NCBI RefSeq assembly: GCF_035594765.1
Contig: NC_085842.1
Coordinates: 269,995,749 to 270,059,748 of the forward strand
DNA from: Anolis carolinensis
Taxonomy: Eukaryota
Direction of reading: 5' to 3'
Length of the DNA: 64,000 nucleotides
Positions 2,133 to 63,898 of the stretch are shown here, piece after piece. Position 1 is the first letter of the stretch; every line of letters starts with the position of its first letter. The position numbers and the translations under genes were made by a program. The notes under the pieces are model-generated. The model was not told the DNA's origin. It searched no databases and saw nothing but the letters and a program-made list of their open reading frames with translations.

Positions 2133-2953
2133 GACTAGAGGCTAGGGAATACTAATAAGTATATGCTAAATGTCATTATTCCTGACAGTACTAATAAGTC
2201 TGCTCTGTCTTCATTGTTTTCTTTGTAAATTGCAATGCGTTTTAATTTTTTTTTTGTTTACCCTGGTAATATATAAAAATTACTAGTACTTAAAATACCA
2301 CATATTAATTAGTACTGTATGTGTAAATCCTGTAGAATCTGTAGAAAAATCTACTTCTATTGACCTTTAGGTGGCAGTATTGACTTTAGAGATGCTACAC
2401 ACATGCCTTTGTGTCCTTGGTACAACAACGAAATGCTGAATATAATGGGGCTGCAAGTATAGTAATGGATATTACCTAGACATAATTTTCTACTTCCCAA
2501 GTAGCAGTGTCAATTTTCATGTTCTTTATATTGCCTTTACAGTAGTCCTTTTTAAAGGTATACAGGTTTATGCAGCACCATATTTGCAGGATAATGCTTT
2601 AGGGTAATTTCTAATTGTGTTTTAGATACATTTATTCATTAGTCCATCTGGTTTTGTCTTCTTGGAATGAAAACATATTAAATGAGTTGGGCATTAGCAC
2701 CTTCAGGTATCATTTATTGCTATTCACGCTAAACCAGTATAAATACTGACTTTCTTTGTCCTGTAATTTCTTTCTGAACAGGAGAAGCAGCCTGATATCT
2801 CCCAAACACCAAAGTGTTTAATTGCTGATAAACCCCTTTCTGGAATATTACCACAAACAGAATTAATTCAATATAAGATTATTGATTATTTTTCTTACAA
2901 GATATTCCAGTTTGAGTGTTATTAACACTGATATCCTACCCCCTCTAAATATA

Positions 2954-3095
2954 GGCCTCTTCTACACTGCCATATAATCCAGATTATAAAATCAGATAAT
3001 CCACATTATTTGATTTGAACTGTGTTATATGAGTCCTCAATGCCATATAATCCAGTTCAAAACAGATAATTTTATATGCCAGTGTAGCAGGGGCC
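2954..3095. mobile_element. PIF/Harbinger-type MITE
   Basis: TIRs ggcctcttctacactg / cagtgtagcaggggcc with 3-bp TSD ata. Confidence 0.65.
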
Positions 3096-4983
3096 ATAGA
3101 GTATGACCAACAATAAATAGCAACATGGTATTTTGTTATCTTCTTCCCATCTGAAGTGCTTGTTCTTCTCTGAAATTGAAAATTTTAGAAATGGCACTAA
3201 AACATGTTAATAGAAAAATATACCTTTCCCAAATGGCAAAAAGGGGATGTAAACATCAGTTCAGTTCATCTTACTAATAGCCTGATATTTATGTCAACAT
3301 TCTCCATGGAGTTAGGATATACTTCATATGTTTTCAAAGGCTATTTTATATGCTTGATTTGTGTAAGATGGGTACTTTCAGGCATGGAAAGAATATTTCA
3401 CCCATGGAATTCTGTCATAGTATTTGTGTATGCATAACTTTCTAAATCTGGCTTTCCCTTTCTATAGACTGCTTGGTTGATGGATTTCATTCCTGCATTA
3501 GTATACTAAGTATCTCCTCATAGTTATTATGCACTACTCCTTGGCTATTTTTTTAGCTACTCTTGTTTTAAGAATGCTCATTAAGCAATATATCAGGCTA
3601 ATTGCAAATGCATTTTGTAGCCTTCAGATTATTATGTATTTTATGCTGCCTGCTCTCTTGAGTAAAAACTACATTTGAGAGTACAGGATACCACAAAACA
3701 AATAACATTATTATGGGATTTGCTTGTTTCGGTTGTTCTAGGTCTGTTTTCCAGATGTGCTATAATGTTCTTTAAGTGCACTTAACTGATATAGTGGTGA
3801 TTGGCATCTATGTGGGCTACTGGCATAATTTTAGAGTAAAAAGTCAGATTCTTTCACTTGGAAATGATACCACGAAGTGGGAATTGTTTTGGTAAAAGTG
3901 TAAGGTAGCATCCTAAAATCGGAAAGCACTAATGACAAGGCTTCAGAATACTATGCTGAAGTCATTTTAAGATCTTTGTAATGTATGCAAAAGATTAAAT
4001 ATACATGGAATTTAGCCAAATCTTAACTTCAGTGAACGTACCCTATATACTCATTTAAGTCACAAATCAACCAAAAAACCTGGGTCCACTTATCCATGGG
4101 TCACTTTGAGTATTGTACTGTAACTCTTATCAGAAAAGGAATCATCTGCTTTTCTGAATAGAGTTACAAAAGGCATGACAGTAGTCCATCCTGGGAGAGC
4201 CTAAAAGAAGCACCAACTCCTTCTTCTCTATCTGCCATGGCACTGTTTCAGGTTTTGTTTTTTAAATGCCTGGGAGGGGAAATGGCAGTGGCAGCTGGCC
4301 TCGAGATAGCACTGGTACCTTCTGCTGTGTGTGGATTAGCCTTCGGCTTATGCATTGGTCATATCAAAATCCATATTTTTGACCCCTTGATTCTTGACAT
4401 TTCAACTTTTTCCCCATCTTAGTATAACAAAGGCTAACTCCCTATGTCTGGAATCCTGTTGATGCAGTATGCTATTCTAATGTTTGTTTCACTATTGGCT
4501 GCAGATTTTGAAATATTGCTCAGAATCTGTGAAAGAGGGTAAATATCACCCCAGGAAATGAAGTCTGCCATCTATAAGCAATCTGTTTATGCAGTATCTG
4601 ACTTTTGGTGGATCCTAAACGCCTATGTGTTCTGGCCAGATGTCTCTGTCCCAGTCTCCATAGAACATTCTGATTTTTTGGATCCATGCATTTGCCAAGC
4701 ATAGTAGAAATAGAATGCTCAGAAAAGTAGCCCTCACTGCCAGTGATTACTTTCTTTGCCTTGCTTCACAGCAGCTTTACTTGTACCCCTCTCTTACCAT
4801 TGCCAATACATGTGCTGTTGTGCACCATCAGGACTTTGTTCTATCTTCTGACAAGAATTTGAGTTGCGTGAATCATTCCTTACATTCAGTATCTTCCTTG
4901 TACCTGCTGTCAATTGTTCTTGTTAAATATATGGTGGCTTATAGTGACTGAAAGGTCCATATATTAGTGAAGTATTCATTTAG

Positions 4984-5487
4984 GGCAGGGCTTTGGCGCA
5001 GCTGGTTAGTAGCCAGCTGCAATAAATCACTATGACCAAGAAGTCATGAGTTCGAAGGCAGCCCGTGTTAGAGTGAGCACCCTACCATTAAAAAAATAGC
5101 TCTGCTTGTTGTTGACCTAAGCAACCCGAAAGATAGTTGCATCTATCAAATAGGAAATTTAGGTACCGCTTATGTGGGGGAGGCTAATTTTAACAAATTT
5201 ACGATACCATAAAAAAAAATTGCCCAGCAGCATTTGGAATGAGGAAGTATCCATCAAGGACTCGGTGTCACAGTGGATGATGAAGTAGCTACTCCCCCAT
5301 GGCCGGAATCGAGCATATCCTCAGTAAGCTGGAAGCTGGAGAAAGTTAAATTGCCTCTGTATCTCTGTCTCTATTTTTCATATGGCATTGAATGTTTGCC
5401 ATGTATGTGTACATTATGATCCGCCCTGAGTCCCCTTCAGGGTGAGAAGGGCGGAATACAAATACTGTAAATAAATAAATAAATAAA
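4984..5487 (+). mobile_element. tRNA-derived SINE (Sauria-like body, L2-like 3' tail)
   Basis: A-box-like tggcgcagctgg, B-box-like gagttcga, L2-type tail gatccgccctgagtcccc...gggcgg and (taaa)n end; shorter relatives at 22917-23151 and 35518-35750. Confidence 0.75.
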
Positions 5488-6474
5488 TTTAAACCCTCAA
5501 AATAGAACCCAGCTTCAATTAGGTGTTTGTATTCCTCACAAGCTTCTTGCAGCAGAGGAATAAAAAGCAGCATGCTATTGGCTTTCTGCAAGGTCATTGT
5601 AAAAACAAACAAACCAAAAACTTAAACAAATGCATAACACAGTTTAGAACAGCTTGAATCCAAAGTAGTACTTTGAATCATTGAGAGGAGTACAATTAAG
5701 AACTTGGACAAACACTATCTCCCCATGGGTGTTCTGTAGCAAATTATTGCTATGCTCTACTACAGAAATTGGCAAGCTGATGCCATTCATATCTTTGAGA
5801 CTATAGTTTCCTTAAGGCCAGCCAGCATGGCTAGCAGAGATTGTGCAAGTTGTACTTCAGAACTTGAAGAGCATATCATGCCACTTATCCCAACACTACT
5901 ATAATGTGATAATTGAAAACGTTTCCTGCAATTAAGCCTCCACTCTTGAAATTGCCAGAGTCGAAGTCCATAGCCACTGCTCTTGGCTGAAATAGCTGTA
6001 TATTTTATCCATGTGTTAACTGTAACTTAATCCTTAAAATGGAAACATGAAATAGGCATTTCCTTTCATTTTATTCACTGTAAATTGTTCACTAAGTACA
6101 GCGTTCCTTTAAAAATTGTTCTTAATATGGCTATTAGTTTAAAACAGTGTTCTTGTGAATCCTAGCATTTTACATTTTGGGTCAGATGTCATTTGGAATA
6201 TTGTGCCTGTTCTGCATACCACAGTTTAAAAAACATTGCTAAATTTTTTAACTTGTTTATTTTATGGTGTTTTAGACTTATTCGTGATGTATTTGGATTG
6301 TTGTTTACATGATTTTAATATGTTGTTAGCTGCTTTTGGTCCTGTGAGGGAGAAAAGTGGGATATAAATAAAGGTTTATTATTAAATGTTGGAGATAGCA
6401 ACTGACTGATAGTTAGATCCTGTAGGAGTTTAGAAAAGCACGTTCATGGTTTACTGCCTGTTCACCTGTTTCTC

Positions 6475-6506
<32 letters not shown>

Positions 6507-8140
6507 CCCCATTTTGGTTTCATGTAGATACTTACATGTTCTCAGGGGCTGCATTTGCTCATTTACTTTTTCTCTCTGATACTTCACAATCAAGATGTGG
6601 TGAGAAAGCGGATGAGATGCTCTATTCTTCCTGAGGCTATGTACCTCAGCCTTTACCTTATTTTAAGAATCTGAGCCTGTATGTGGTTGTGTACAAACTA
6701 TGAGTGAATTTTTAATATCTTATACAGAAGATTTAGGTTTGATTCTTTTATCTGCTAGACAAAGTGGGGGAGGTTTCGGGGTTTTTTTTGTTCTAGCTTT
6801 TGCCTTAATGTTCTATAGGATTTATTATAAAATTATTATTAAAATATTATAAAATGTATTTGAAACCCAAAAGTAAGCTGGAATGTGTTCAGGAGAAGTC
6901 AGCCAAGATGTTGAAAAATTTGGAATTACTGTATTTACTCAAGTCATCAATCTAATGCGCACCTAAATTTTCAAAACTCTGAAACTAAAAAAAGTATTTG
7001 CTGATGAATGTATGCACAGCAGCAAATTTTGCACCCTTTGTAATATGACCATTATAGTTGTTGCCAGTTTAGAATTCCTTCTTTAAAACAAAAGTGTTAG
7101 AACACCAAAGATTTCAGCAGTGGAAAAGAAAACTTTGGGGTGCATCTCTGCTGTATAATGCATCCACTTTAACTGCATTGGTTCAGTGCTATGGAGTCAT
7201 GGTGTCTGTAGTTTTACAAGGCCTTGAGTTTTTTCTGTCAAAAACTACCACTCCCAAGACTATATAGGATTGAGCCAGGGCCATTAAATTACGGATGAAG
7301 TCCCTTTAAGAGGAGTTCCAGGTGTTTTTGAAGCAACTTCCCTTTTGCTTTGGCTCAGCACAAGATTACAGTATAATGCGAATCTAACATGCACCCAGAG
7401 CCGGTCCAACAATGTTTTGCGGTCGCTTGATTCTTTTATCTGCTGAAGTGTTTAAAGCTGTTTGTTTAGTTTTCTGTCATCGGAACTAAAGTTGCACAAA
7501 CTGCAAACAGGCACTTGGAATGCTGATGGAAGGAAACAGCTTTGTTTGTGGTTTTTGCATAGTATCTTAATCCTATGCATATCTACTCAGAAGTAGACAT
7601 TGCAAGTATTTCAGACTTCAGCCAATCCCCCATATTTGTGAGCGTTAGGGGCACATGACCTGGTGAAAATGGAAAATTCTTGAGTGTCATAATATCTCCC
7701 CATTTATGCTGCATACAGGATCCTTTCCCACTTTCAGACCCAGCCCCTCACGCTTCCCAGCTTTTCAGCATGAAGCCTCAGCCAGATTTGAAACTCCTTT
7801 GTACTTGTCTGAATGGTTTCTATGAAATGCATTTTTAGTTAAATTTTGACCCAGGGTTGTCTGTAAATGCCTTGATTAAAAAGTCTTCTTAAAGCACCAT
7901 TAGGTTTCTGTTACTGTTGGATAAGGACCCCAAAATCAATTAACAATTTCTGATCAATACACTTTTGTTAATAGATTTGATACTCATTTTAGTTTTAAAT
8001 GCATTTTTATAGTCAGTCTCTGTTTGTGTATCTGAAAGTGGCCAACATGGCTACATGTGAATATGTAGTTACAATATGTAGGCTGGAAGTTACAAAGTTA
8101 CAAATTGTGTCTGCAAGAATAATATGTACAGTAGAGTCTT

Positions 8141-8660
8141 GCTTATTTATTTATTTATTTATTTATTAGACTTGTATACCGCTACTCCCAGTTTGGCTTG
8201 GAGCGATTTACAGAAATAGATTAAAACAATACAATTAGCTTTAAAATAACAATAAAAACAACAATAAAAACAACAATAAAAACAGACATAGCCCTGAGTT
8301 TTTCACCCATTGAAAGCTTGTCAGAAGAGAAAGGTTTTGCAGGCTTTCCGAAAGGCAAGTAGGTCTCGGATAGTTCGAGTTTCAACTGGCAAGGCATTCC
8401 ATAAATGAGGGGCTACAATCGAGAAGGCTCTCTGCCTAGTAGAAGACAAATAATAAGTCCGTATGTTAGGGACTTCAAGCAAATGTTGGTCTTTGGACCG
8501 AAGTAATCTCTGGAGTTGGTAGGGGGATAAGCAGGCCCTCAGGTACGCCAGCCCCAAACCATATAAGGCCTTAAAGGTTAGTACCAGTATCTTGAAAGTA
8601 ATCCGGTACTCAATTGGTAGCCAGTGCAGCTGTTGTAGAATTGGGGTGATACGCCACCTC
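8141..8660 (-). mobile_element. L2 LINE 3' fragment (RT C-terminus)
   Basis: ORF 8321-8713 contains ITPILQQLHWLPIEYRITFKILVLTFKAL...RAFSIVAPHLWNALP...FRKACKTFLF, typical L2 ORF2 C-terminus; (TAAA)n tail. Confidence 0.85.
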
Positions 8661-9231
8661 GCCTCACCTCTATTGTGCAGTGCAGTTTTAACTAATCCAC
8701 TCAGGGGATTCAATAAAGAAGAAATAAATAATTACAATTACCATAATTTTTATATTACTTTTGTCCAGGATTTATTTTCCTCTAACTGTAGATGTAACTA
8801 GAACATGGTAGGTAATCCTGTACATCAATCACAATGGTCCATTGCTTGCGTGATTATTCTGCATGAATTATGATCCTGCAGCCTTCCCTTGCTTCCTGCA
8901 ATTTTTCCATCAAGCTAGGTCCTCTCCCTGGATACAGTACGACATGGTACAAATAGTGTTAGAATTATGGAGACTCTGCAAGCAGAAGGTTTTGGTGCTT
9001 CCCTCTCTCTGCCTTGCTGAAGGAAGAACACAAAGAGGAAAATATGTTGGCACCGTGCCTGTACCTGTGCTTTCCCTTTATTATCTTTCCCAGTGGAAGT
9101 GTTAGAGGGGAAACATACTCTGTGGGAGCTGCCATGTCGAAGCATTTCTGAGCTTGATTTTAATAATACTAAGCCTGAATGACTGGGGAGTAGCTTTGAA
9201 TACTTTTCTGCTGCAACCATATTACTATGTA

Positions 9232-9554
9232 CAGTAGAGTCTCACTTAACCAACATTCGCTTATCCAACCTTCTGGATTATCCAATGCATTTTTGTAGTC
9301 AATGTTTTCAATACATCGTGATATTTTGGTGCTAAATTTATAAATACAGTCATTACAACATAACATTACTGCATATTGAACTACTTTTTCTGTCAAATTT
9401 GTTGTGTAACATGATGTTTTGGTGCTTAATTTGTAAAATCATAACCTAATTTGATGTTTAATAGACTTTTCCTTGATCTCTCCTTATTATCCAACATATT
9501 CGCTTATCCAACGTTCTGCTGGCCTGTTTATGTTGGATAAGTGAGACTCTACTG
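9232..9554. mobile_element. Tc1/mariner-type MITE, family A
   Basis: TIR cagtagagtctcactta / taagtgagactctactg flanked by TA; further copies at 31635, 37304, 47823 and 61017. Confidence 0.9.
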
Positions 9555-10069
9555 TAGTTACAATTTGTCTCATCCACATATTGTTGGATAGTCCTTTTCT
9601 CAAGGCTCTACTCTAAGCATGATCTTCTTGAAGCTTCTTTGGTTATTGCTAGACTTTAGAAAAACCGAGTTAAGAGCATCATCTCGTTCTATTATATTCA
9701 GATATATCGTGTTCATTGAGGCTTTGTTCCAACTAATTGAATGTGAAAATGTGTATATATGCTGCACAGACAACATTTCCCACCTCAGGTGTATATCTTA
9801 ATCAGGGATGCTTCAGGCACATAATTTGGCCTTTATAGGCTATTTTGCAAGATCACTCACTTCTCCTGTGAATTAAGAGCCTAAATGTTAAAAGAATTAG
9901 AGTGGATTTTCAAGCGCTTTGGAATTGTTTGGGAATACATTGACCTAATGATAGCTCATTGGTGTGTTAGTAAACCAGGAGCTATGGAAACATGCCCTCC
10001 ACTATGTGCCTTTCTCTTAGCTTTAAATCATGGTTTAGCTTATACTTGTATGGAAGCTAATCATGTTTT

Positions 10070-10880
10070 GAAGTTGAACCTGGAAGCCCAGGTATCTGCT
10101 TTGGCCAAGAGGGACTTTGCACAATTAAAACTTGAGTGTCAACTGTGCCCGCTCCTTGAGAAGCCAGATCTGGCCACAGTGGCCCATAGGGTGGTTTCAT
10201 CCCATCTGGATTACTGTAACACGCTATACATGAGGCTGGTTGGAAGCTTTGGTTGCTAACTGGGGCAGGCTACAGGGAGGGGACAACCCCCCTCCTGCAG
10301 CGCCTCCACTGGCTGCCAGTCTGTTTCTAGACACAATTCAAAGTGCTGGCTATGACCTTTAAAGCCCTAGACCAGTGGTGCTCAACATGTGGGTCCCCAG
10401 ATGTTTTGGCCTTTAACTGAAATTCGAACTACCCGAGATCTACTTGCCTTTCGGAAAGCCTGTAAAACCTTTCTCTTCCGACAAGCCTTCGATGGGTGAA
10501 AACTTGGGGCTATGTCTGTTCTTATTGTTATTTAAAGCTAACTGTATTGTTTTATCTATTTTTGTAAACCGCTCCGAGCCAAATTGGGAGTAGCGGTATA
10601 CAAGTCCAACAAATAAATAAATAAATAAATAAACTCCCAGAAATTTTAATAGCTGGTAAACTGGCTGGGATTTCTGAGAGTTGTAGGACAAAACACCAGG
10701 GAACCCACAGGTTGAGAACCACTGTTATAAGATAGTTCAGGCCCAGGCTATTTGTTTAATTCTGTTTTAATGTTTGTATATTTTAAATTGTATAGTAATG
10801 CCTTTATTAGCATGCAAAGGGGACTCAAGACACTTTAAGTCTCCCTTGGGGAGATAATGCAGGGTATAAGCAAATATAAT
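10070..10880 (+). mobile_element. Degenerate L2 fragment interrupted by a hAT MITE (10373-10724) that itself contains a younger L2 3' end (10419-10633)
   Basis: SHLDYCNTLY and LHWLP-type L2 motifs; MITE TIRs cagtggtgctcaac / gttgagaaccactg; inner insert ends in (aaat)n. Confidence 0.75.
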
Positions 10881-11059
10881 ACTACTACTACTACTACTAA
10901 TAAAAATAAATATAGCCTACATTGCCTGGTAACTGATCTAGTAAGATGGACCAGTCGCTTTCCACTAATAGTCCCGTTTGCATCCTTCTCCTAGCACTTT
11001 TGATGGCTAAGACACTTTGGATAACCACTCCCCCCTGATGATGATATCGACATAACTAG

Positions 11060-11250
11060 CACTTTAGCCCAGTTTCCTACAGATTTTATCCATGATTTTA
11101 TCAAGATGTATTGTATGTGTTTTTATAATTTGTTTTATTGTTGTTTGATTTGTTTTACTGCTTGTTTTTACATTGTCATGACCGGGCTTGGCCCCATGTA
11201 AGCCGCCCCGAGTCCCTTCGGGGAGATGGGGCAGGGTATAAGAATAAAAA

Positions 11251-11302
<52 letters not shown>
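11060..11302 (+). mobile_element. LINE (L2-type) 3' tail with (ATT)n microsatellite
   Basis: gtaagccgccccgagtcccttcggggagatggggcagggtataagaataaa followed by (att)n; 5' boundary approximate. Confidence 0.6.
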
Positions 11303-11307
<5 letters not shown>

Positions 11308-14300
11308 CTCATTCAAGTACCTACTAGGGTTGACCCTGCTTAGCTTCCAAGATCTGATGTCTTTAGGATATTCAAGCAAGCTATTCAGTTTTTAATCTCT
11401 TGGAAATATTCTTTTAAAAGAATTCCAAAATTGTATGCTGTCTGCTGTGACTTATTGAAATTGATATTTTTCTTAAAATGGTGAGTTCAAGCCATAAATA
11501 TTCAACATGAAAATAAGGAATCATCTGTGAAATACAAAAATATTTGTGTAGAATAAATCAGGTTTGTCACATATCTTCATATGGAATTACTTTGCATAGA
11601 AAGACTGCAAACACTGTCTTTGTAACTGTAACTTGGTAACAGACAGACCCTATTGTATTGAGTGTTCTAGTGCAGTGAGGCTTTATATTGTAAACATGGC
11701 ATTCTTCATTGTAGCAGCCTTGCTCTTTCGCATGTTTATAAAGAGCTGTGAATCATGAGAATTGTGTGATTGTTAATTGTGAAAGCTGCATATATAGTTA
11801 TATGTTGAGAACGGTATATATATAATTTAGAATTGAAATATGTTTTTTTCTGTATTGTGTGCGTTGCATGCATGTCATATATATATTTAACAGTGAGAGC
11901 TTGTAAATTAACATTTAGATTAATACTATTGGTCTTACTCTAGTTGGGACTTGAATTGGATTAATGCCTTTGTCTCTTTATGCAGGTTTTTGTGCATGAG
12001 ATTCTTATCTATTTAATGTATTTCTTTTTGTCATTTGAGTAAATTGTGCACATCAAGTGCTTTAAGGACAGTGTGCCATTAGTATTCTACTTAAAAAGGA
12101 CCATGGCAGAGGTTTTAATGTATTTTTCTAAGAAAAATAAGAAATTAGTATGAAAAACTAGCTTGAAAATACAAGTATTAATACTAGCCTAGGTTTGTTT
12201 TCCATTTTTTCCAGAATTGTTAACAATAACCACTATTTTTTAAATCATGGTTTCCAAACTAGATACAAATACATTTATGGATAAATATTGTTTCTTGGTG
12301 AAGATGCGATAATATGGTTAATATTGGAAGATAAGGGAGGGAAAAACTGTCTTGACAGGAGACTGAAATTGATAAACTTTAGATCTGTACCAGTCCTTTA
12401 TGATAAGTATCTGATCAGCTTTTCCAAAATTGAAAAAGAAGTACAATCCTTTTTTATACTTCTCTGTTAGCACAAAGATTTTCTTTTTCTAGACAAAAAT
12501 TAAATTCTGTTAGCATAATGTTGTTTTTATTCATAAGTACTTATTTTACTCTGCCTTTCTAGTTCAAGACTTGAAGCAATTAAGACTGCTTGCAAAGCAA
12601 ATTTATAAGTATCAAAAGTAATTAAGAGACAACCAAAAGTTGTAACAAAATTATAGATAAAATTACATTGGTATTGAAATTTTGCTGTAAGAGATTTAAG
12701 GACTACTACCATTAAATAGAGTAAAATTAGACACAGTCTGTTCAGGATACTTTTCAGATAAGTCACTATAGATTCCCAATTGTAGATATTTAAAGGCTTG
12801 GATTCACTATGCTACTTTGGATTAATAATGATGTAATACTGTAATGAAGTACTGTTCAAGACTGAACTAAAATGGATCGCACAAATACAGGACAAATTAC
12901 AGATAAAGGATTGTCAGTTCAAGATTCTGCTCCTGGAACAAATTAATTCCAACATTTGTGGTTTGTGCTGACCAATTAAATTAATACATGATTTGGTGAA
13001 TATTTATTCTGAATTAAATGTGTGTTCAATGGGACCCAGTGTTTTTGAAACCCAGCCTTAAAAGGACAGTTGTTTTTTTTTTTTGTTTTTTTTTAAAGGA
13101 TCTACCACATTGTCATTATTGCACTGAGATTGTGACAGCAGTGAAAGCAGGTATGAGACATGTTTTTGGAGTGGCACCTTTGTTTTTAATTTCCTCTGAG
13201 TAAAACCTTTGTGCAGTTTTAAAAGTATATCTGCACAAAGTTTGATTTTTAGATTTACCTTAGAGAATGTTTGGCCTTTGTGAATTTGAGTTGCTGAAGA
13301 ATGAGCATCAGGAGAATCTCCAAGACAATTAAATGTGTAAAGCCTAGACTATTAAAATTTCAAAGAGATCTTTTTTAAAAAAGATTAAAGTAAGTACCTG
13401 TTTTAAATTTGCTCCTGGAATGGTTGGGTGTAGTATTCTAACTATTGAGCCTCTGTATTTGAGGCTTTAAAATTGTTGAAATAGTGGTCATGTAAGTATT
13501 TATTGTGGTTACCTCTTTGTTTCTCTCATTTATTGTGTTCAGATACTTCATGGATGTGGGAAAAGTTTATTTTAACTATTATGCCATGTTAAATCATTTG
13601 TCCTTTTTGTTGTGGTTGTGAACCTGAAATTATCATTTCCATTTCTAAGAATACTAAGTCAAAGTAACAGGCTTTGTTTGTGTGCTTTTTCATCATGTCT
13701 AGTCAGTTTATATACTATTCACAACTATAATTTTAAAGAGACATTTGTTAAATCTGGATTGTATTTGATGGGCTACCTAAAAATAATTCATTCCATAGTA
13801 GTTGATAGCTGGTTCCTAGCCTTGATACCACACTAGTCTGAACATTTTTTTAAAGCTCCACAGTTCAGCTACAAGACATTCAGTATGTGAAAGAAGATTT
13901 AAACAAACTTTCCATAACAGTACTTGTAGAATCTGTGTTTCATGGTAACCACCATGACGTTCACAGCGTTTAAGGCGATGAAGAAGCTGACATGAAAAGA
14001 TAGTAATTCATGAAGACTTGGCTTCACAGTGTGTGCATAATCCTTCATGCTCTCAATGGTACCCTAACCCTTGTACCCACCAGAACAAAAGAAGCTGAAT
14101 TGGAAATTGTGGGAGCTGGGGAATGTTCCCTTGGCAGTGCAGCTCATGGCCCACAGGCCTTGTCAGGACTCAGTTTGAAGTCTTTTATTCTTTCTGACAG
14201 ATGCGAGGTAAGTTCTATGAGGTGGAAGTCATTACTCGAGTGAGGGCAATGTCAGATCAAAAGTAACCAGTGATCAAACAAGGTGAAGGGGCTGTGGAAA

Positions 14301-53352: not shown

Positions 53353-55151
53353 TATAAAACAAACACACAATTATAATAGCAATAGAAAGTCATGAAATAA
53401 TTTGTTATTCCTTAAAAAAAAGAAGAAGAGAATCTTCTAGAAAGTATTAAACTTACATGAAAGCATCTTGAGATCAATTAAGATAGAGAATATCATTGCT
53501 TTATGAAGTGTACTTCATACCAAAATAAATTTGTTTTTCTGTTCTAAAATAATTTGTTTAATATGTACCAGGGTGATATGTAAACTTCAGAATGGATTTC
53601 AGTCAGGTTTCACATGGCATCTGTGTAACAATTTGAGGGGCTGGATAGAAAAAAAACCCTATTACAATACATAGTAAGAGTATGAACTCCATTCAAACCA
53701 GTGTTATTACTTCTGAGTAAACCCACATGGGATTGTTCAGTAAGGTTATGTGTATGCAGGCCTTTGAAGAGTTGGATTTACAAGTTGCTAATTCAAATAC
53801 TCATTTAAAGGCTCAAAGGAATAAATGTTTAGCCTGAGGTTAGACAAGCAGTGATCAAAAGGATGACGGCAAAAACAAGAGATGAAACTGTTTTCTTTTT
53901 GCTTCATCCACGAAGTAAACAACAATCAATAAGGTTAAATTATTGAACATTTAAGTTCAGATTAGGAGAAATTTGATTATAAAAATGGATAGTCCTAAAT
54001 AAATGGTTGAGTAGCTATGTTGTGTTCCCCTTCCCCTGGGAAAGGAGTTTGTACGAATGGATTAACTATTACTCTTCCTTGGTTAGCTTTGTGCTGCTGC
54101 TCTGGAAATCCATGTTTCTGGATGAAAGTATAACTTAAAATTGTTAACATGAACTTCTGTTTACAAAGAAGTTCAGGATTGGGTTCATTTGAAGTCTGCA
54201 GATTATGGCACAATACAGTTTTTAAGTTCAGGTCTGTTTCTTATTTGGTTACATTCCTTAGCCTGTGCTAGTTCTAGTACCTGAGTGGTGGATACTAATC
54301 CATATTGCAGAGATTGAAATGTAGATGTTGCTGGACTGCAATTCTTTGTGTATTTAGCTAGCATAGCAAATGGTAAAGAATGCTAGGAATTGCAGTTCAG
54401 TATCTAGAATGTCACAATTTTTACATCCTTGCTCTATCTGAACATCCCATGCTATGTCACAATACCTTACCATTTTTTCAGAAATACAACCTACCTTATA
54501 CATATTTTGAAAAGCAGGGGAGGGATTTATTAAAGTTCAAATGTGAAATACTTATTCAGTATGCAGCATACTGCAGCAGACAGAAGACTGTATAATGAAA
54601 ATAAATTGAGGATGGTTTGATAGACTGAATTGTAAAATGTTCCTGATAGTCTAAAAACACAAAATAGCTTTTATTTTAGCCAAGGATTTCATTGTTCACT
54701 ATTTCTTTATTTTGATGTCTTACTTGAAGAGTAAAATGTACCAAGAAAATAATGTAAATATAAAGCTTCTTTTTGTGTTCTTTTGGTTTTCCACAACAAG
54801 GGTGTGAAATATCAAATTTATTTTATTAAGATGTGTAATAGCAAGAAAACATATTCTTCCAATAGTAATGAAATTATTCAAATTATACAAAATTTTAATT
54901 ACATTTTCATTAGAATTCAAATTGCTTATAGAATGAACACACACAAACACCAAGAACTTGGATAATTAATTATTTTAATATATTTATTAAAATGATTTAA
55001 TAACATTGCATTATAGTTGTAACTTCATAAGGGATACCTTCATTCCTTTTGTTGTCTAAGTGTTCATTTTTGTTAATTTTGTTAATTCTACAAGATGGAA
55101 AAGGGGTAGTATGACATGGCTCAAATGCTGTTTCCTACTGTACTCAATGGT

Positions 55152-56031
55152 TGTGATGACTCATGGGCCATGTAGTCCCGTTCCTAACACTGTTGTGACA
55201 GATGAAGAGGAAAACTTAGGTTTCCCACCGTTTCAGCCAGAATTGGAGCTTTTTCAGCCAGAATTGGAGCCCTTGCACCTGCAGGAGATTTGCCTTCCAG
55301 AAGTCTGCCAAACAAGCCTTGAGCCGAAATCTCCCCCATTTTCTCGCCGTGATTATTATAAACAACAGAAAGGCGCTCAGGAGGCGTCTCGCAGGAGCGC
55401 TAGAATTGCTGCCAGGCATTCAGCTGATTAAGCCTGCTTCCCATGGGAAACTTTAGGGAGTCATGCATCTGGACACAGAGAATGGCTTTCGGTTCTGGTT
55501 CCCCAGAGAATTGTTCTTTGGCGGGAAAACGAGACCCTACTTAGGTGTTTTGCCCACGTAGGAATCTTGCGGAGTCAATTCGTCAGCTTCGGGAGTAGGT
55601 TGTGTGTGGACTACGCTACTCCCGCGTCCAAGCCCTTTGCTCCCGTTTCCAGCCTTGCCTTGCTTTCCAGGACCTTGCCTTGCTCCACGGACCTTGCCTT
55701 GCTTTCCGGACCTCGCCACGAATTTACCACGGATCTTGTTCTTGCTCCTCGTTTCTTGTTGCCTTGAATTAAGCCTAGTGTTCCAAGAATCAAGTTTACT
55801 TCCTAGCCTTGCTTAAGTTTCATGGACTAAAGGACCTTGTCATCTCCCCTCACTTTGCTTGGCAAAGTGAGTGTTTCGGTTACTGGATTACAACTTTGGA
55901 CCTTAATATTTCATATTGGACATTGTTTTCTTGGACTAATTTTGACCTTTCCTGAAAGGTCTACTTCTGAACTATTTTATACACTGGCCTCTGTGTATGG
56001 TTATTGGTGCTCTGCAGCCTGGGTCCTGACA
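55152..56031 (+). repeat. 5' LTR (880 bp; lacks 51 bp including AATAAA)
   Basis: Starts tgtgatg, ends cctgaca; shared portion matches the 3' LTR with one visible substitution. Confidence 0.93.
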
Positions 56032-56033
56032 GT

Positions 56034-56043
56034 TTGACTCCGC
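56034..56043 (+). promoter_or_regulatory. Self-priming primer-binding site
   Basis: ttgactccgc lacks the TGG of a tRNA PBS and is the exact reverse complement of gcggagtcaa at 55569-55578 inside the 5' LTR. Confidence 0.75.
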
Positions 56044-56073
56044 CACCTTAAGCACCAATTAACCTAGGCCAGA

Positions 56074-57060
56074 ATGTCTACCGGAGCCGGACCGGGTGAC
56101 CAACCACTCAGCTACACCATCGCCAAGGATGAAGTGGACAGAATCCGTGATATGCTCCATACGCAGGAGGGAGAAATACGGGGCTTGAAGGAACGCGGAA
56201 CCCGTCTCCCTGCCCTGGCGTTGCCAACCAAGTTTTCTGGAGAAGCTTCCAAGGTTCATGTTTTCCGTCGTCAATGCCAGGCATACCTAGAAGCCCGTCA
56301 GGCCGAGTTTCCTCAAGAAGACATCAAGGTGGCGTGGATTTACAGTCTCCTAGACGGCCCAGCGGCCAATTGGGCCACGGCGCTGTTCGATGAAGCCTCC
56401 CCACACCTAAGTTCCGCGCAAAACTTCCTGAATCACCTTAAGGTGACTTGGGGGATCGAGGACAATTTAGAGGCGGCCGGCCACAAACTCCGGCGCCTTT
56501 CTCAAGGGGACAGGCCCTTGTCCCAGTACATAGCCGAGTTCCGAGTGCTGGCCCAAAGCACCGGTTGGAATGACATAGCCCTCAGAGGACAGTTTCGGGA
56601 GGGCCTCAACATCGAGATGTTGGAAGAAATCTCCAAGGTGGATCCTCCAAACTCTCTTGAAAGACTCATTGACCAATGTTTACGAGCCGAAGTCATGCTT
56701 GCCAACAGAAAACAATGGCTCCGAGGCCAGAGTGGAAGAGCTGTAGCAAAACCTCCCGCTCCCGCCGGCATCCAGCCACGTCCAGTGTGGAGACCCCCGC
56801 CACCAGCCCCATACCCCAGAGACAGCGGGGAGGTGCCGATGCAATTGGGCAACGTGCGTCCCAGATTAGACGTTGCCGAGAAGGCCCGCCGCCAACGCTT
56901 AAACCTCTGTTGGTACTGCGGAGACGGGGGCCACTTCGCCAGAGAATGTCCAGCCAAAAGAAAGCCCGCCGCTCATTTGGCGGCGGCGTCTTCCGTGGAG
57001 ACAGAGACGGCCGAGGCGGCTAGCGCAAAGTCGGCGGGGGAAGCCAACGACCGGGCGTAG
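56074..57060 (+). CDS. gag: Gag (capsid plus CCHC zinc knuckle), PEG10/RTL-like type
   Basis: 328-aa ORF: LPTKFSGE, LSQGDRPLSQYIAEFR, QFREGL, VPMQLG and CWYCGDGGHFAREC motifs. Confidence 0.95.
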   Translation: MSTGAGPGDQPLSYTIAKDEVDRIRDMLHTQEGEIRGLKERGTRLPALALPTKFSGEASKVHVFRRQCQAYLEARQAEFPQEDIKVAWIYSLLDGPAANWATALFDEASPHLSSAQNFLNHLKVTWGIEDNLEAAGHKLRRLSQGDRPLSQYIAEFRVLAQSTGWNDIALRGQFREGLNIEMLEEISKVDPPNSLERLIDQCLRAEVMLANRKQWLRGQSGRAVAKPPAPAGIQPRPVWRPPPPAPYPRDSGEVPMQLGNVRPRLDVAEKARRQRLNLCWYCGDGGHFARECPAKRKPAAHLAAASSVETETAEAASAKSAGEANDRA

Positions 57061-60000
57061 AGAGGCTCGCCAACCCGGTCAGAAACCCCACTCAAGAACC
57101 GCCAACCGGGGTCCTATTTCTCCTAGTGGTCACCTTGTGGTCAGCGAAAAAAGGACCCGTCATGATCCATGCCATGATAGACTCGGGAGCAACAAACAAT
57201 TTCATCGACAGAGAGTATGCCGACTCTCTGGGATTACAATATCACGATTTCAAGAACGCTCGGGTGGTGCAAGCCATAGATGGCCGCCCCCTAAAGACAG
57301 GTCCAGTAAGCCAATGGTCTGAACCCACCAGAATGTGGATAAGGGAACATATGGAAGAGATTTCCTTCTTTGTTACCGAGGTTCCTCACTTCCCTGTGAT
57401 TTTGGGGATTCCATGGCTGACGCTCCACGACCCCAGCATCTCTTGGACCAACAGAGAACTGCAGTTTGCTTCTAAATATTGCCAAAACCATTGTCTTGTA
57501 GCCAAGGTCTGTCACGCCACAGACGCTGAATCCATCATCACCTTGCCCAAGAAATACTCCGACTTTTGGGATGTTTTCAATGAAAAAGAAGCCGCGAGAC
57601 TACCCCCGCATAGGCCTTATGATTGTGCCATTGACTTGGTGGAGGGGCCCCCGATCCCGCGAGGACATCTCTACTCCTTGACTGAACCAGAGCAAGAAGC
57701 TCTCAGGGAGTTCATAGAGTCAAACCTCCGCAAGGGGTTCATCAGACCCTCTCAATCCCCAGCCGCTTCCCCAGTGATGTTTGTGAAAAAGAAGTCAGGG
57801 GACCTACGCTTGGTGGTGGACTATAGAGCATTGAACAATATCACTAAGCGGAACCGCTATCCCCTGCCTTTGATCTCGGACCTATTAGACTGGCTTCGAG
57901 GGGCCAAGGTTTACACCAAGCTGGATCTTCGGGGGGCTTATAATCTAGTTCGCATCAGGGAGGGGGACGAGTGGAAAACCGCCTTCCAGACTAAATTCGG
58001 ATTATTCGAGTCCCTGGTCATGAATTACGGTTTATGTGGAGCTCCCGCAACGTTCCAGCATTTTGTCAATGATATCTTTCAGGATTATCTAGATCGGTTC
58101 TTGATCATCTACTTGGACGATTTTTTGGTGTTTTCTAGATCACAATCAGAACATGAGAACCACGTCAGAATGGTGTTACAACGATTGCGGGATCATGGAC
58201 TTTATGCCAAGCTGGAAAAATGCGCTTTTGATCTACAAGAGGTAGATTTCCTGGGATACCGTGTCTCGCCACTAGGGCTCTCCATGGACCCGGCAAAGGT
58301 TTCAGCAGTATTGGAATGGCGGGCGCCAACCAACAAGAAAGAGGTGCAGCGTTTCTTGGGGTTCGTGAACTATTACCGCAAGTTCATTCCAGACTTTGCC
58401 CGCTGGTCTGATCCAATCACCAGCTGCATCCGTGGGAAACAGCCTTTCCGCTGGACGGAGCAAGCAGAGAAAGGGTTCCAGCAACTAAGGAAATTATTCA
58501 CGTCCCAGCCTATCCTTCAGCACCCAGATCCTAAAACCCCTTTTGTTGTGCAGGCTGACGCTTCCGATGTGGCAATTGGGGCTGTACTCTTGCAACCAAT
58601 GGGAGATCATCTTCACCCTTGTGCTTTTTACTCCCGTCAACTAACAGCCCCAGAGAGAAATTACACTATTTGGGAAAAAGAACTTTTGGCCATAAAGGCA
58701 GCCTTTGAAACTTGGAGACATTGGTTAGAAGGGGCCAAATTTCCCATTGAGGTCCATACTGATCATCGGAATCTAGAACATCTAAGAACTGCCCGCAAGT
58801 TAAATCAGAGGCAGCAGCACTGGGCTTTATTCTTTGAGCGTTTTGACTTCCAGATCCATTATGTAACCCCAGCTCAGACCAAGCAAGCAGATGCTCTATC
58901 ACGGAAACCAGAATATGCTGCAGGGCGCAGAGAGACCTTTGAATCCCAATTGCTGCAGCCCGAGAACTTTGCCACGCTCACAGTGGGGAACACCAAATCC
59001 ACTCCAATTGAATCTACTTCCTCTACTCCAGGGCCCCTTTGTGCTCAGGAAATCAGGGCCAGTCAACAGGCGGGTGCCTGGGCTCAAGATCAACTTCGCC
59101 AAGGACTACATTTTCCCTTCTCGCTTAAGGATGGGTTGCTTTGCTATAGAAATCACGTCTACATCCCTCCAGGACCGGGCAGGGAGAAGGCACTTCGTCT
59201 GTGTCATGACTGCAAGCCAGCAGGGCATTTCGGATTATTTAAAACCATGCATTTGATCCTAAGAGATTTCTGGTGGCCCAAGATCCGCAAGGATGTGGAA
59301 AAATATGTCAATACCTGCCCAGTATGTCAGCGTTCCAAGACAAGAAGGGAGAAGCCCTCAGGGCTACTGCATCCCCTTCCTACTCCATCTCGTCCATGGG
59401 AAATAATTTCTGCGGATTTTATCACTGACCTACCACCTTCCCTTGGATTCACCACGATCCTAGTGGTGGTGGACCTTTTTACCAAGTTAGCCCATTTCAT
59501 TCCCTGCGATGGCCTTCCCACGGCCAAAGAGACTGCAGATTTATTCCTTCAGCATGTTTTCAGATTACATGGTTTGCCCAAGAGTTTGGTCACAGACCGT
59601 GGGTCTCAATTCACCTCTCGTTTCTGGAAAGCACTACAAAAACTATTGGGCATAGACTCTCGTTTATCTTCGGCTCACCATCCCCAAACGGATGGGCAAA
59701 CTGAGCGCACCAATGCCACTTTGGAACAATACCTTCGCTGTTATGTAAACTATCAGCAGGACAATTGGGCTTCCCTGTTGCCGCTGTCGGAGTTTGCCTA
59801 CAACAATGGTGTCCAGGCTTCAACTAAAGAAACCCCGTTCTTTGCAAACTACGGCTTCCATCCACGTTTCTTTCCTTCTGTCATTGAAACCTCAGAAGTT
59901 CCCGCAGCAGAGGACTGGCTGCAAGAGCTCACAGCAGTGCAACAACTTTTGCTCCAGCAACTAGATCAAGCCAAGGAGGACTATAAACGCCACACTGACA

Positions 60001-60584
60001 ATCATCGCCAGCCGGGCCCCGAAATCAAGGTAGGAGACCGGGTTCTTCTGTCCACTCGCTTTTTGCCCTCCCACCGCCCTTGCCGGAAGCTAGATGCCCG
60101 TTTCATTGGTCCCTATCCAGTGGTGGCGCAACTTAACCCCGTGACTTTCAAACTTCAACTTCCGCGCTCTATGCGCATTCATCCAGTGTTTCATTGCTCC
60201 CTGCTCCTTCCGGCGGATGGTGTGCGCCCTGATGCAGACCGGCCGGCCCCCACTCCTGTTTTGGTGGATGGGGAGGAGGAATTCGAGGTTCAGGACATTT
60301 TGGATTCTCGCTTTCATCGCCGCCGCCTTCAGTATCTCATTGACTGGGTAGGTTTTGGCCCCGAAGAACGCTCTTGGGAAGACGCTTCCACAGTCCATGC
60401 CCCCAATTTAGCCCGCCGCTTCCACCAGGCCTACCCCGCCAAGCCGCGGCCCCGCACCTCGGGAAGAGAGCCCATTTTGGAGAGGGGCCTTGAGGAGGGG
60501 GATAGTGTGATGCTCCTCGTTTCTTGTTGCCTTGAATTAAGCCTAGTGTTCCAAGAATCAAGTTTACTTCCTAGCCTTGCTTAA
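57024..60584 (+). CDS. pol: Pol polyprotein (protease, RT, RNase H, integrase, chromodomain), -1 frame relative to gag
   Basis: MIDSGA protease, YLDD RT, ADASD/TDHRNL RNase H, HHCC plus D-D-E integrase, GPY motif, chromodomain FEVQDILDSR...YLIDWVGFGPEERSWE; frame is open from 57024 (ORF track starts at 57126). Confidence 0.95.
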   Translation, partial: RKVGGGSQRPGVERLANPVRNPTQEPPTGVLFLLVVTLWSAKKGPVMIHAMIDSGATNNFIDREYADSLGLQYHDFKNARVVQAIDGRPLKTGPVSQWSEPTRMWIREHMEEISFFVTEVPHFPVILGIPWLTLHDPSISWTNRELQFASKYCQNHCLVAKVCHATDAESIITLPKKYSDFWDVFNEKEAARLPPHRPYDCAIDLVEGPPIPRGHLYSLTEPEQEALREFIESNLRKGFIRPSQSPAASPVMFVKKKSGDLRLVVDYRALNNITKRNRYPLPLISDLLDWLRGAKVYTKLDLRGAYNLVRIREGDEWKTAFQTKFGLFESLVMNYGLCGAPATFQHFVNDIFQDYLDRFLIIYLDDFLVFSRSQSEHENHVRMVLQRLRDHGLYAKLEKCAFDLQEVDFLGYRVSPLGLSMDPAKVSAVLEWRAPTNKKEVQRFLGFVNYYRKFIPDFARWSDPITSCIRGKQPFRWTEQAEKGFQQLRKLFTSQPILQHPDPKTPFVVQADASDVAIGAVLLQPMGDHLHPCAFYSRQLTAPERNYTIWEKELLAIKAAFETWRHWLEGAKFPIEVHTDHRNLEHLRTARKLNQRQQHWALFFERFDFQIHYVTPAQTKQADALSRKPEYAAGRRETFESQLLQPENFATLTVGNTKSTPIESTSSTPGPLCAQEIRASQQAGAWAQDQLRQGLHFPFSLKDGLLCYRNHVYIPPGPGREKALRLCHDCKPAGHFGLFKTMHLILRDFWWPKIRKDVEKYVNTCPVCQRSKTRREKPSGLLHPLPTPSRPWEIISADFITDLPPSLGFTTILVVVDLFTKLAHFIPCDGLPTAKETADLFLQHVFRLHGLPKSLVTDRGSQFTSRFWKALQKLLGIDSRLSSAHHPQTDGQTERTNATLEQYLRCYVNYQQDNWASLLPLSEFAYNNGVQASTKETPFFANYGFHPRFFPSVIETSEVPAAEDWLQELTAVQQLLLQQLDQAKEDYKRHTDNHRQPGPEIKVGDRVLLSTRFLPSHRPCRKLDARFIGPYPVVAQLNPVTFKLQLPRSMRIHPVFHCSLLLPADGVRPDADRPAPTPVLVDGEEEFEVQDILDSRFHRRRLQYLIDWVGFGPEERSWEDASTVHAPNLARRFHQAYPAKPRPRTSGREPILERGLEEGDSVMLLVSCCLELSLVFQESSLLPSLA

Positions 60585-60850
60585 ATTTCATGGACTAAAG
60601 GACCTTGTCATCTCCCCTCACTTTGCTTGGCAAAGTGAGTGTTTCGGTTACTGGATTACAACTTTGGACCTTAATATTTCATATTGGACATTGTTTTCTT
60701 GGACTAATTTTGACCTTTCCTGAAAGGTCTACTTCTGAACTATTTTATACACTTGCTTTTATTAACCTTATATATTTCCTCAATAAAGATATTAGATAGT
60801 TTCTGGCCTCTGTGTATGGTTATTGGTGCTCTGCAGCCTGGGTCCTGACA
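60506..60850 (+). repeat. 3' LTR (345 bp; lacks 586 bp of U3 and start of R, retains AATAAA at 60782-60787)
   Basis: tgtgatg joins directly to ctcctcgtttc (equivalent to 55745); ends cctgaca followed by the TSD. Confidence 0.93.
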
Positions 60851-61016
60851 ATGGTAGATATAGAGGGAATCTCTAAGAGAGTTAAAAGTGTGTTCTGCCA
60901 GCAGGGTGCAGCATTCATACTTTATAAACAGTAACCATTTTAGTTAATTTTGAGAAATTGAAAAAACAAAGAGATTTTAATTGTGACCAACACCCCCCCC
61001 CCCACCATAATAGCTA

Positions 61017-61485: not shown

Positions 61486-61616
61486 NNNNNNNNNNNNNNN
61501 NNNNNNNNNNNNNNNNNNNNNNNNNNNNNNNNNNNNNNNNNNNNNNNNNNNNNNNNNNNNNNNNNNNNNNNNNNNNNNNNNNNNNNNNNNNNNNNNNNNN
61601 NNNNNNNNNNNNNNNN
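61486..61616. other. Assembly gap
   Basis: Run of N. Confidence 1.
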
Positions 61617-63628: not shown

Positions 63629-63898
63629 CAGGGGTGTCAGGCTCATTTTTCTTGAGGGCCACACCAGCCTTATGATTGTCTTCAAAGGGCTGTTGTCCCC
63701 ATGGACAAATAANNNNNNNNNNNNNNNNNNNNNNNNNNNNNNNNNNNNNNNNNNNNNNNNNNNNNNNNNNNNNNNNNNNNNNNNNNNNNNNNNNNNNNNN
63801 NNNNNNNNNNNNNNNNNNNNNNNNNNNNNNNNNNNNNNNNNNNNNNNNNNNNNNNNNNNNNNNNNNNNNNNTAGTTTTTGCCCAGTTTGGGTCTCCTG
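63629..63898. mobile_element. Probable hAT MITE spanning an assembly gap (N at 63713-63871)
   Basis: caggggtgtcaggct start and agtttgggtctcctg end. Confidence 0.5.

Follow-up and report, generated by a model that had tools for sequence, protein, structure and literature searches.

Where does the integrase of an LTR retrotransposon end when its reading frame has no stop before the 3' LTR, and what might the protein sequence that is then added from the LTR be good for? This question is raised by a young Ty3/gypsy chromovirus at positions 55152-60850 of a 64,000-nucleotide stretch of the Anolis carolinensis genome (the window; contig NC_085842.1 of assembly GCF_035594765.1, positions 269,995,749 to 270,059,748), which also contains two runs of N at 61486-61616 and 63713-63871. 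An earlier note, made from the sequence alone, had claimed that the element hides the C-terminal tail of its integrase in the U3 region of its LTR, that this tail ends in a motif resembling the nucleosome-binding core of HMGN proteins, and that the integrase of intact relatives would thus carry two chromatin tethers, a chromodomain and an acidic-patch anchor, joined by an acidic, proline-rich linker. What the note had observed in the sequence is confirmed throughout, whereas its interpretation is supported only in part, since the coding predictions hold but nucleosome binding remains an inference by analogy. None of the conditions that the note had named as refuting its reading was encountered. 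The element is organized as follows, with all features on the forward strand:

55147..55151 (+), left copy of the 5-bp target-site duplication ATGGT
55152..56031 (+), 5' LTR (880 bp, TG...CA), which keeps the whole U3 ORF but lacks a 51-bp piece present in the 3' LTR and in all related LTRs
55153..55431 (+), tail ORF in U3, 92 sense codons (V-M plus 90 further codons) followed by TAA, in the frame that Pol uses when it enters an LTR
55231..55272 (+), tandem duplication of 21 nt (7 residues, twice), 55231-55251 versus 55252-55272, 19 of 21 identical, with a repeat number that varies in frame between subfamilies
55390..55416 (+), HMGN-like motif RRSARIAAR, five residues from the C-terminus
55569..55578 (+), GCGGAGTCAA, complementary to the primer-binding site and likely the start of R
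56034..56043 (+), primer-binding site TTGACTCCGC, 2 nt after the 5' LTR
56074..57060 (+), gag (328 aa), with Retrotrans_gag/DUF4939 and a CCHC zinc knuckle
57024..60584 (+), pol open frame (ORF 57126-60584, open from 57024), at -1 relative to gag, encoding protease, RT, RNase H, integrase (zinc-binding, core and SH3 domains) and a chromodomain
60282..60428 (+), integrase chromodomain with an aromatic residue at each of the three HP1 cage positions (F, W, F)
60492..60505 (+), polypurine tract GAGGAGGGGGATAG, translated as part of Pol (EEGDS)
60506..60850 (+), 3' LTR (345 bp) with a 586-bp internal deletion right after TGTGATG, which removes the tail ORF; this LTR keeps the 51-bp piece with AATAAA (60783-60788)
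60851..60855 (+), right copy of the target-site duplication ATGGT

The assignment to the chromoviruses rests on two LTRs with TG...CA ends that are 99% identical over their shared parts (self-BLAST and repeat search), the short target-site duplication, the order of the Pfam hits in gag and pol, and a chromodomain (Pfam Chromo, E 1e-8) that aligns without gaps to those of HP1 alpha and beta and is of type I in the sense used in PMC3059260. As the note had stated, Pol has no stop before the 3' LTR and reads the polypurine tract as ...EEGDS and the LTR start as V-M (60507-60512). In this copy, however, the 3' LTR lacks the equivalent of about 55159-55744, so that Pol runs out of frame after V-M for 23 codons to a stop at 60582-60584, and the frame that would have encoded the tail stays open only in the 5' LTR.

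That such a frame is open by chance can be ruled out from other copies, and the window itself already points in this direction: the other five frames of the same 276 nt hold 2-8 stops, and the pattern RRS.R[LI][AST][AST] occurs once in the six-frame translation of the whole window, against 0.015 expected per shuffled window. Whether relatives with complete 3' LTRs read to the stop in U3 had been named beforehand as the main test, and they do. A search with the C-terminal region of the window's Pol (residues 960-1151) found as closest proteins A. carolinensis retrotransposon Pols about 90% identical over this region, among them two UniRef representatives, P0001 (1211 aa, cluster of 94 members) and P0002 (1212 aa, cluster of 366 members), both of which continue past ...GDSVM into [S/T]HGPCSP... 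and end in ...ASRRSARIAAKNLAN. Of the cluster members listed, at least 17 carry a complete tail of 88-100 residues that ends at the same place, whereas two others show private lesions, a premature stop in P0020 and a different U3 deletion, which also removes the motif, in P0019. The tail is hidden only in the window copy, which is a correction to the note; it is already present, without annotation, in hundreds of public predicted Anolis proteins.

At the DNA level, the comparison covers three further elements of the A. carolinensis assembly GCA_035594765.1 (L001, L002 and L003), as look-ups of the exact proteins P0002, P0019 and the window's gag returned no contig. All three show the same junction of polypurine tract and LTR. 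In L002 both LTRs hold the intact ORF, and the pol frame runs through the polypurine tract to the conserved stop, 92 codons into the 3' LTR. L003 has an intact ORF in the 5' LTR and a 20-nt deletion in the 3' LTR, and L001 has a 1-nt indel in one LTR and a CAA-to-TAA change in the other. Each of these lesions, like the 586-bp deletion of the window copy, is private to one LTR of a pair. Since the two LTRs of an element are copies of one template, such lesions arose after insertion, and all four elements inserted with an intact tail.

The four elements represent subfamilies whose LTRs differ by 15-36%, whereas the LTRs of a pair differ by less than 1%, so that post-insertion noise is small. In the Pol frame, Nei-Gojobori dN/dS of the tail is 0.11-0.57 between subfamilies, with differences concentrated at third positions and a synonymous excess of p from 2e-4 to 1e-8 in four of the six pairs. 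Four of the other five frames give about 1, and all five hold stops in every sequence; the low value in antisense frame -1 is expected, because this frame shares third positions with the Pol frame, and it was rejected as a coding signal, as the frame holds 4-6 stops. The last 1.5 kb of pol, with integrase and chromodomain, gives 0.07-0.14 as a control, indicating that the tail is constrained, but less so than the integrase core. Indels between subfamilies are only 21 and 6 nt inside the ORF (the UniRef tails differ also by a 5-residue block at the duplication), but 1, 1, 1, 2, 3, 7, 12 and so on in the remaining ~600 nt of the LTR. Nucleotide divergence is no lower inside the ORF than outside, 0.15-0.37 against 0.15-0.31.

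In an alignment of 18 chromodomain-plus-tail segments, the distal tail is variable except for RRS[A/L]RIAA[K/R], in which R, S, R, I, A and A are invariant and the second R is nearly so; single copies with R-to-S changes (P0025, P0016) look like decay. Synonymous codon changes occur at six of the seven conserved positions (all but the first R) across the four subfamilies: R2 is AGG or CGA, S is AGC or AGT, R5 is AGA or CGG, I is ATT or ATC, and the two A are GCT/GCA and GCC/GCA. Only position 4 switches, between A (GCT, GCC) and L (CTG, TTA). The motif is thus kept through many synonymous codon changes, so that the peptide and not the DNA is selected, which excludes a DNA-level element as the reason for its conservation. 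Other conserved blocks of the tail are HGPCSP, DE[E/D]EN-x-GF, LHL and S-x-x-F-x-R. The first 74 residues are acidic (net charge -7) and contain 12 prolines, whereas the last 18 residues have a pI of 11.5.

The position of the ORF within the LTR was inferred from the primer-binding site. The ten bases that start 2 nt after the 5' LTR are complementary to LTR position about 418 (equivalent positions 394-418) in all four subfamilies; in the absence of an RT phylogeny and a mapped transcript start, this conserved 10-nt complement is the only indication of self-priming, as described for Tf1/sushi elements of yeast and vertebrates (PMC6317226). It would place the start of R near 55569, and on this inference the ORF lies wholly in U3.

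RRSARLSA is the conserved nucleosome-binding core of the vertebrate HMGN proteins (HMGN1-5). Cryo-EM shows RRSAR of HMGN2 and PPRRSSRLT of the tardigrade protein Dsup (RRSSRLTS) in the H2A-H2B acidic patch, with two buried arginines and a serine that makes hydrogen bonds to H2A, while phosphoserine is predicted to repel (PMC12487698). The closest experimentally validated match, which the earlier note did not give, is yeast Dot5 RRSARIAT, which binds nucleosomes through this motif, requires R6, R7 and R10, and loses binding on acidic-patch-mutant nucleosomes (PMC13347269 and its preprint). The anole motif is identical to Dot5 at 7 of 8 positions and to HMGN at 6 of 8; it shares the core R-R-S-x-R-[L/I] followed by two small residues, and position 4 also varies among the proven binders (A or S), although leucine at this position, seen in several subfamilies, is a residue without binding data in any known binder. 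The motif furthermore sits in a stretch without domain match, close to a protein terminus, and is accompanied by a second chromatin-binding module, as in Dot5 and Dsup. The resemblance covers 8-9 residues only: the tail is not a member of the HMGN family, as Pfam HMG14_17 matches none of the 18 tails even at E up to 10, Pfam found only Chromo in the tail and the chromodomain-plus-tail segments, and a sequence search of the PDB with the last 30 residues gave no hit. An AlphaFold2 model from the 18-row alignment was of low confidence (mean pLDDT 55), with even the chromodomain poorly modelled; it draws the last 25 residues as a helix, whereas HMGN and Dsup bind in an extended form. AlphaFold 3 is noted to fail on HMGN-nucleosome complexes (PMC12487698).

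Taken together, the element is a recently active Anolis chromovirus, possibly of the Tf1/sushi type, and the analysis shows, with little room for doubt, that Pol of this family does not stop before the 3' LTR, that translation as read from the open frame runs through the polypurine tract and the LTR boundary and adds 85-100 residues encoded by U3, and that this acidic, proline-rich tail of variable length with its almost invariant basic end is kept by purifying selection on the protein. The function is inferred from sequence alone: the motif may work like that of HMGN, Dsup and Dot5, its arginines inserting into the acidic patch, and together with the HP1-like chromodomain about 110 residues upstream it would give the integrase two contacts with a nucleosome and tether the integration complex to chromatin, most likely H3K9-methylated chromatin, as chromodomains of this type are said to recognise methylated H3K9 (PMC3059260). 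For this binding mechanism the balance is about even. The window copy lost the tail from Pol after insertion, and the sequence survives only in the untranslated 5' LTR.

The most serious alternative, possible but less likely, is that the tail is a selected part of integrase whose basic end serves something other than the acidic patch, such as nuclear import, docking of a host protein in the manner of the MLV integrase tail and BET proteins (PMC4027182), a phosphorylation switch, or a contact with the acidic linker. Selection indicates that the peptide matters and not what it binds, the opposite charges of the two parts of the tail leave room for an internal or electrostatic role, and there is no HMGN homology beyond the motif. 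However, the conserved positions (R1, R2, S3, R5, I/L6 and small residues at 7 and 8) are those shared by three proven nucleosome binders, as is the variable one, and RRSAR does not fit the classical monopartite import signal K-K/R-x-K/R. That conservation reflects a DNA function of U3, with the open frame as a by-product, is very unlikely. U3 carries the promoter, and the HGPCSP block (LTR bases 8-25) overlaps the LTR terminus that integrase must recognise, so that part of its conservation may be at the DNA level; yet the divergence of the ORF equals or exceeds that of the rest of the LTR, changes pile up at third positions in one frame, all indels between subfamilies inside the ORF are multiples of 3, and motif codons differ by up to two bases while encoding the same residue, which largely refutes this view.

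Two further readings concern origin and expression, and both are very unlikely. The motif could have been captured from a host HMGN gene, these being vertebrate genes and the match RRSAR[I/L][A/S]AK spanning 9 residues in most copies; against this, Pfam detects no HMGN similarity outside the motif, and yeast and tardigrade show that the same short sequence occurs in unrelated proteins. The proposed mechanism would be the same with either origin. Alternatively, the U3 ORF could be made as a separate accessory protein, from the ATG at LTR bases 5-7 (the second codon of the LTR frame) or by splicing, as host gene models do splice into the LTR ORF, for example P0015, an NCBI model that ends with the tail. 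However, the frame is continuous with Pol, with no separating stop in any copy or protein seen, and the element's own promoter does not transcribe the U3 of the 5' LTR (the start of R being inferred).

An integrase C-terminus encoded in the 3' LTR is not unprecedented, which is a further correction to the note. [quoted passage not shown] In CRM, this CR motif replaces the chromodomain and has no identified binding partner, whereas the anole element, a vertebrate one with putative self-priming, keeps a complete HP1-like chromodomain and adds a second, unrelated module. The note's statements on HMGN, KSHV LANA and foamy virus Gag are correct. In LANA, hCMV IE1 and the chromatin-binding sequence of prototype foamy virus Gag, a short terminal peptide with an arginine anchor holds a viral genome on host nucleosomes, and for foamy virus this steers integration sites (PMC9040877; PMC12125541); these peptides have other sequences and shapes and sit on Gag or latency proteins rather than on integrase, and the review of viral acidic-patch binders does not mention retrotransposons (PMC9040877). 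In other retroelements, short C-terminal integrase modules choose the chromatin context by binding a host adaptor (MLV integrase tail and BET proteins) or a histone-tail mark (type I chromodomains of fungal and vertebrate chromoviruses and H3K9me) (PMC4027182; PMC5053271; PMC3059260), whereas the proposed second contact here is the histone core surface itself. Full-text literature searches for the HMGN-like motif or the acidic patch together with retrotransposon integrase found no prior report.

How LTR retrotransposons and retroviruses choose integration sites is still largely a matter of finding the tether, and a selected HMGN-like motif next to a chromodomain offers a concrete two-contact model. 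In its boldest form, which is somewhat less likely than not, a vertebrate retrotransposon has evolved a genuine HMGN-type acidic-patch anchor by writing coding sequence over its own U3 promoter region; chromodomain and anchor would then grip the same nucleosome, by the H3K9me tail and the H2A-H2B surface, and set where the element integrates. This would be the first acidic-patch tether borne by an integrase and a further occurrence of RRSxR[L/I] in an unrelated protein, after HMGN, Dsup and Dot5. The element also provides a clear animal example of protein-coding sequence written over U3, in which the same bases must serve as integrase substrate, promoter and coding sequence, and it supports the recent suggestion that many proteins with this motif remain unrecognised (PMC12487698).

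Outside this family, the tail was not recovered. A search with the tail alone among proteins of similar length found nothing, and an exhaustive HMMER search of 1.84 billion representative proteins found only five, the four whose sources were looked up being from A. carolinensis, so that on these data the tail is traced in this species only. Among the C-termini of more distant chromovirus Pols that were read (Crotalus, Cirrhinus, metagenomic and fungal-like), none has the tail or the motif; several of the metagenomic ones, however, do seem to read through a polypurine-tract-like G-G-V-M or G-A-T-V-M into long extensions.

No tRNA-type primer site is apparent in the element; the 10 bases following the 5' LTR (window 56034-56043) are complementary to a site about 418 nt into the LTR (window 55569-55578), and the same arrangement is seen in the three further elements L001, L002 and L003, in all four subfamilies. 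This complementarity fits self-priming of the Tf1/sushi type and marks the likely U3/R border. Near 55988/55989, the 5' LTR lacks a 51-bp piece that is present in the 3' LTR (60757-60802) and in every related LTR; this piece holds the only AATAAA (60783-60788). Each LTR of this copy has therefore suffered its own deletion. A second, different U3 deletion, extending from after ...EEENFGFP to near the end of U3, removes the motif from the Pol of another copy (protein P0019); the central part of U3 may be prone to deletion, or, alternatively, tail-less forms may circulate. Within the tail, a second invariant block, DE[E/D]EN-x-GF, lies at about 55207-55230 of the window (columns 95-102 of the protein alignment A1). 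It is an acidic run ending in an aromatic residue and, by sequence resemblance alone, recalls the acidic-aromatic motifs by which histone chaperones hold H2A-H2B.

In L001, positions 2227-11624 form a tandem arrangement, LTR-internal-LTR-internal, the two units of which are 98.9% identical; the two elements share the middle LTR and sit inside an intron of a pterin-4-alpha-carbinolamine dehydratase 2 gene model. Host gene models in A. carolinensis absorb pieces of this element, as seen for the proteins P0015, P0016, P0017, P0020, P0021 and P0049: P0015, an NCBI model, splices into an LTR and ends with the tail, including RRSARIAAKHSAD, whereas P0020 and P0021 are element Pols named after the host genes whose loci hold the insertions (PCBD2 and KCNQ5). 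These models are either annotation artefacts or exonised LTRs.

Four distant Pols of metagenomic chromoviruses (P0009, P0010, P0011 and P0013) also seem to read through a polypurine-tract-like ...GGVM or ...EEGATVM. Past this point, P0011 continues for roughly 300 residues, while P0009, P0010 and P0013 run about 40 further residues to their ends, after long extensions beyond the chromodomain; coding into the LTR may be commoner among chromoviruses than is usually noted. In the window, gag and pol overlap by about 37 nt (57024-57060), with pol at -1, which implies a -1 frameshift for Gag-Pol.
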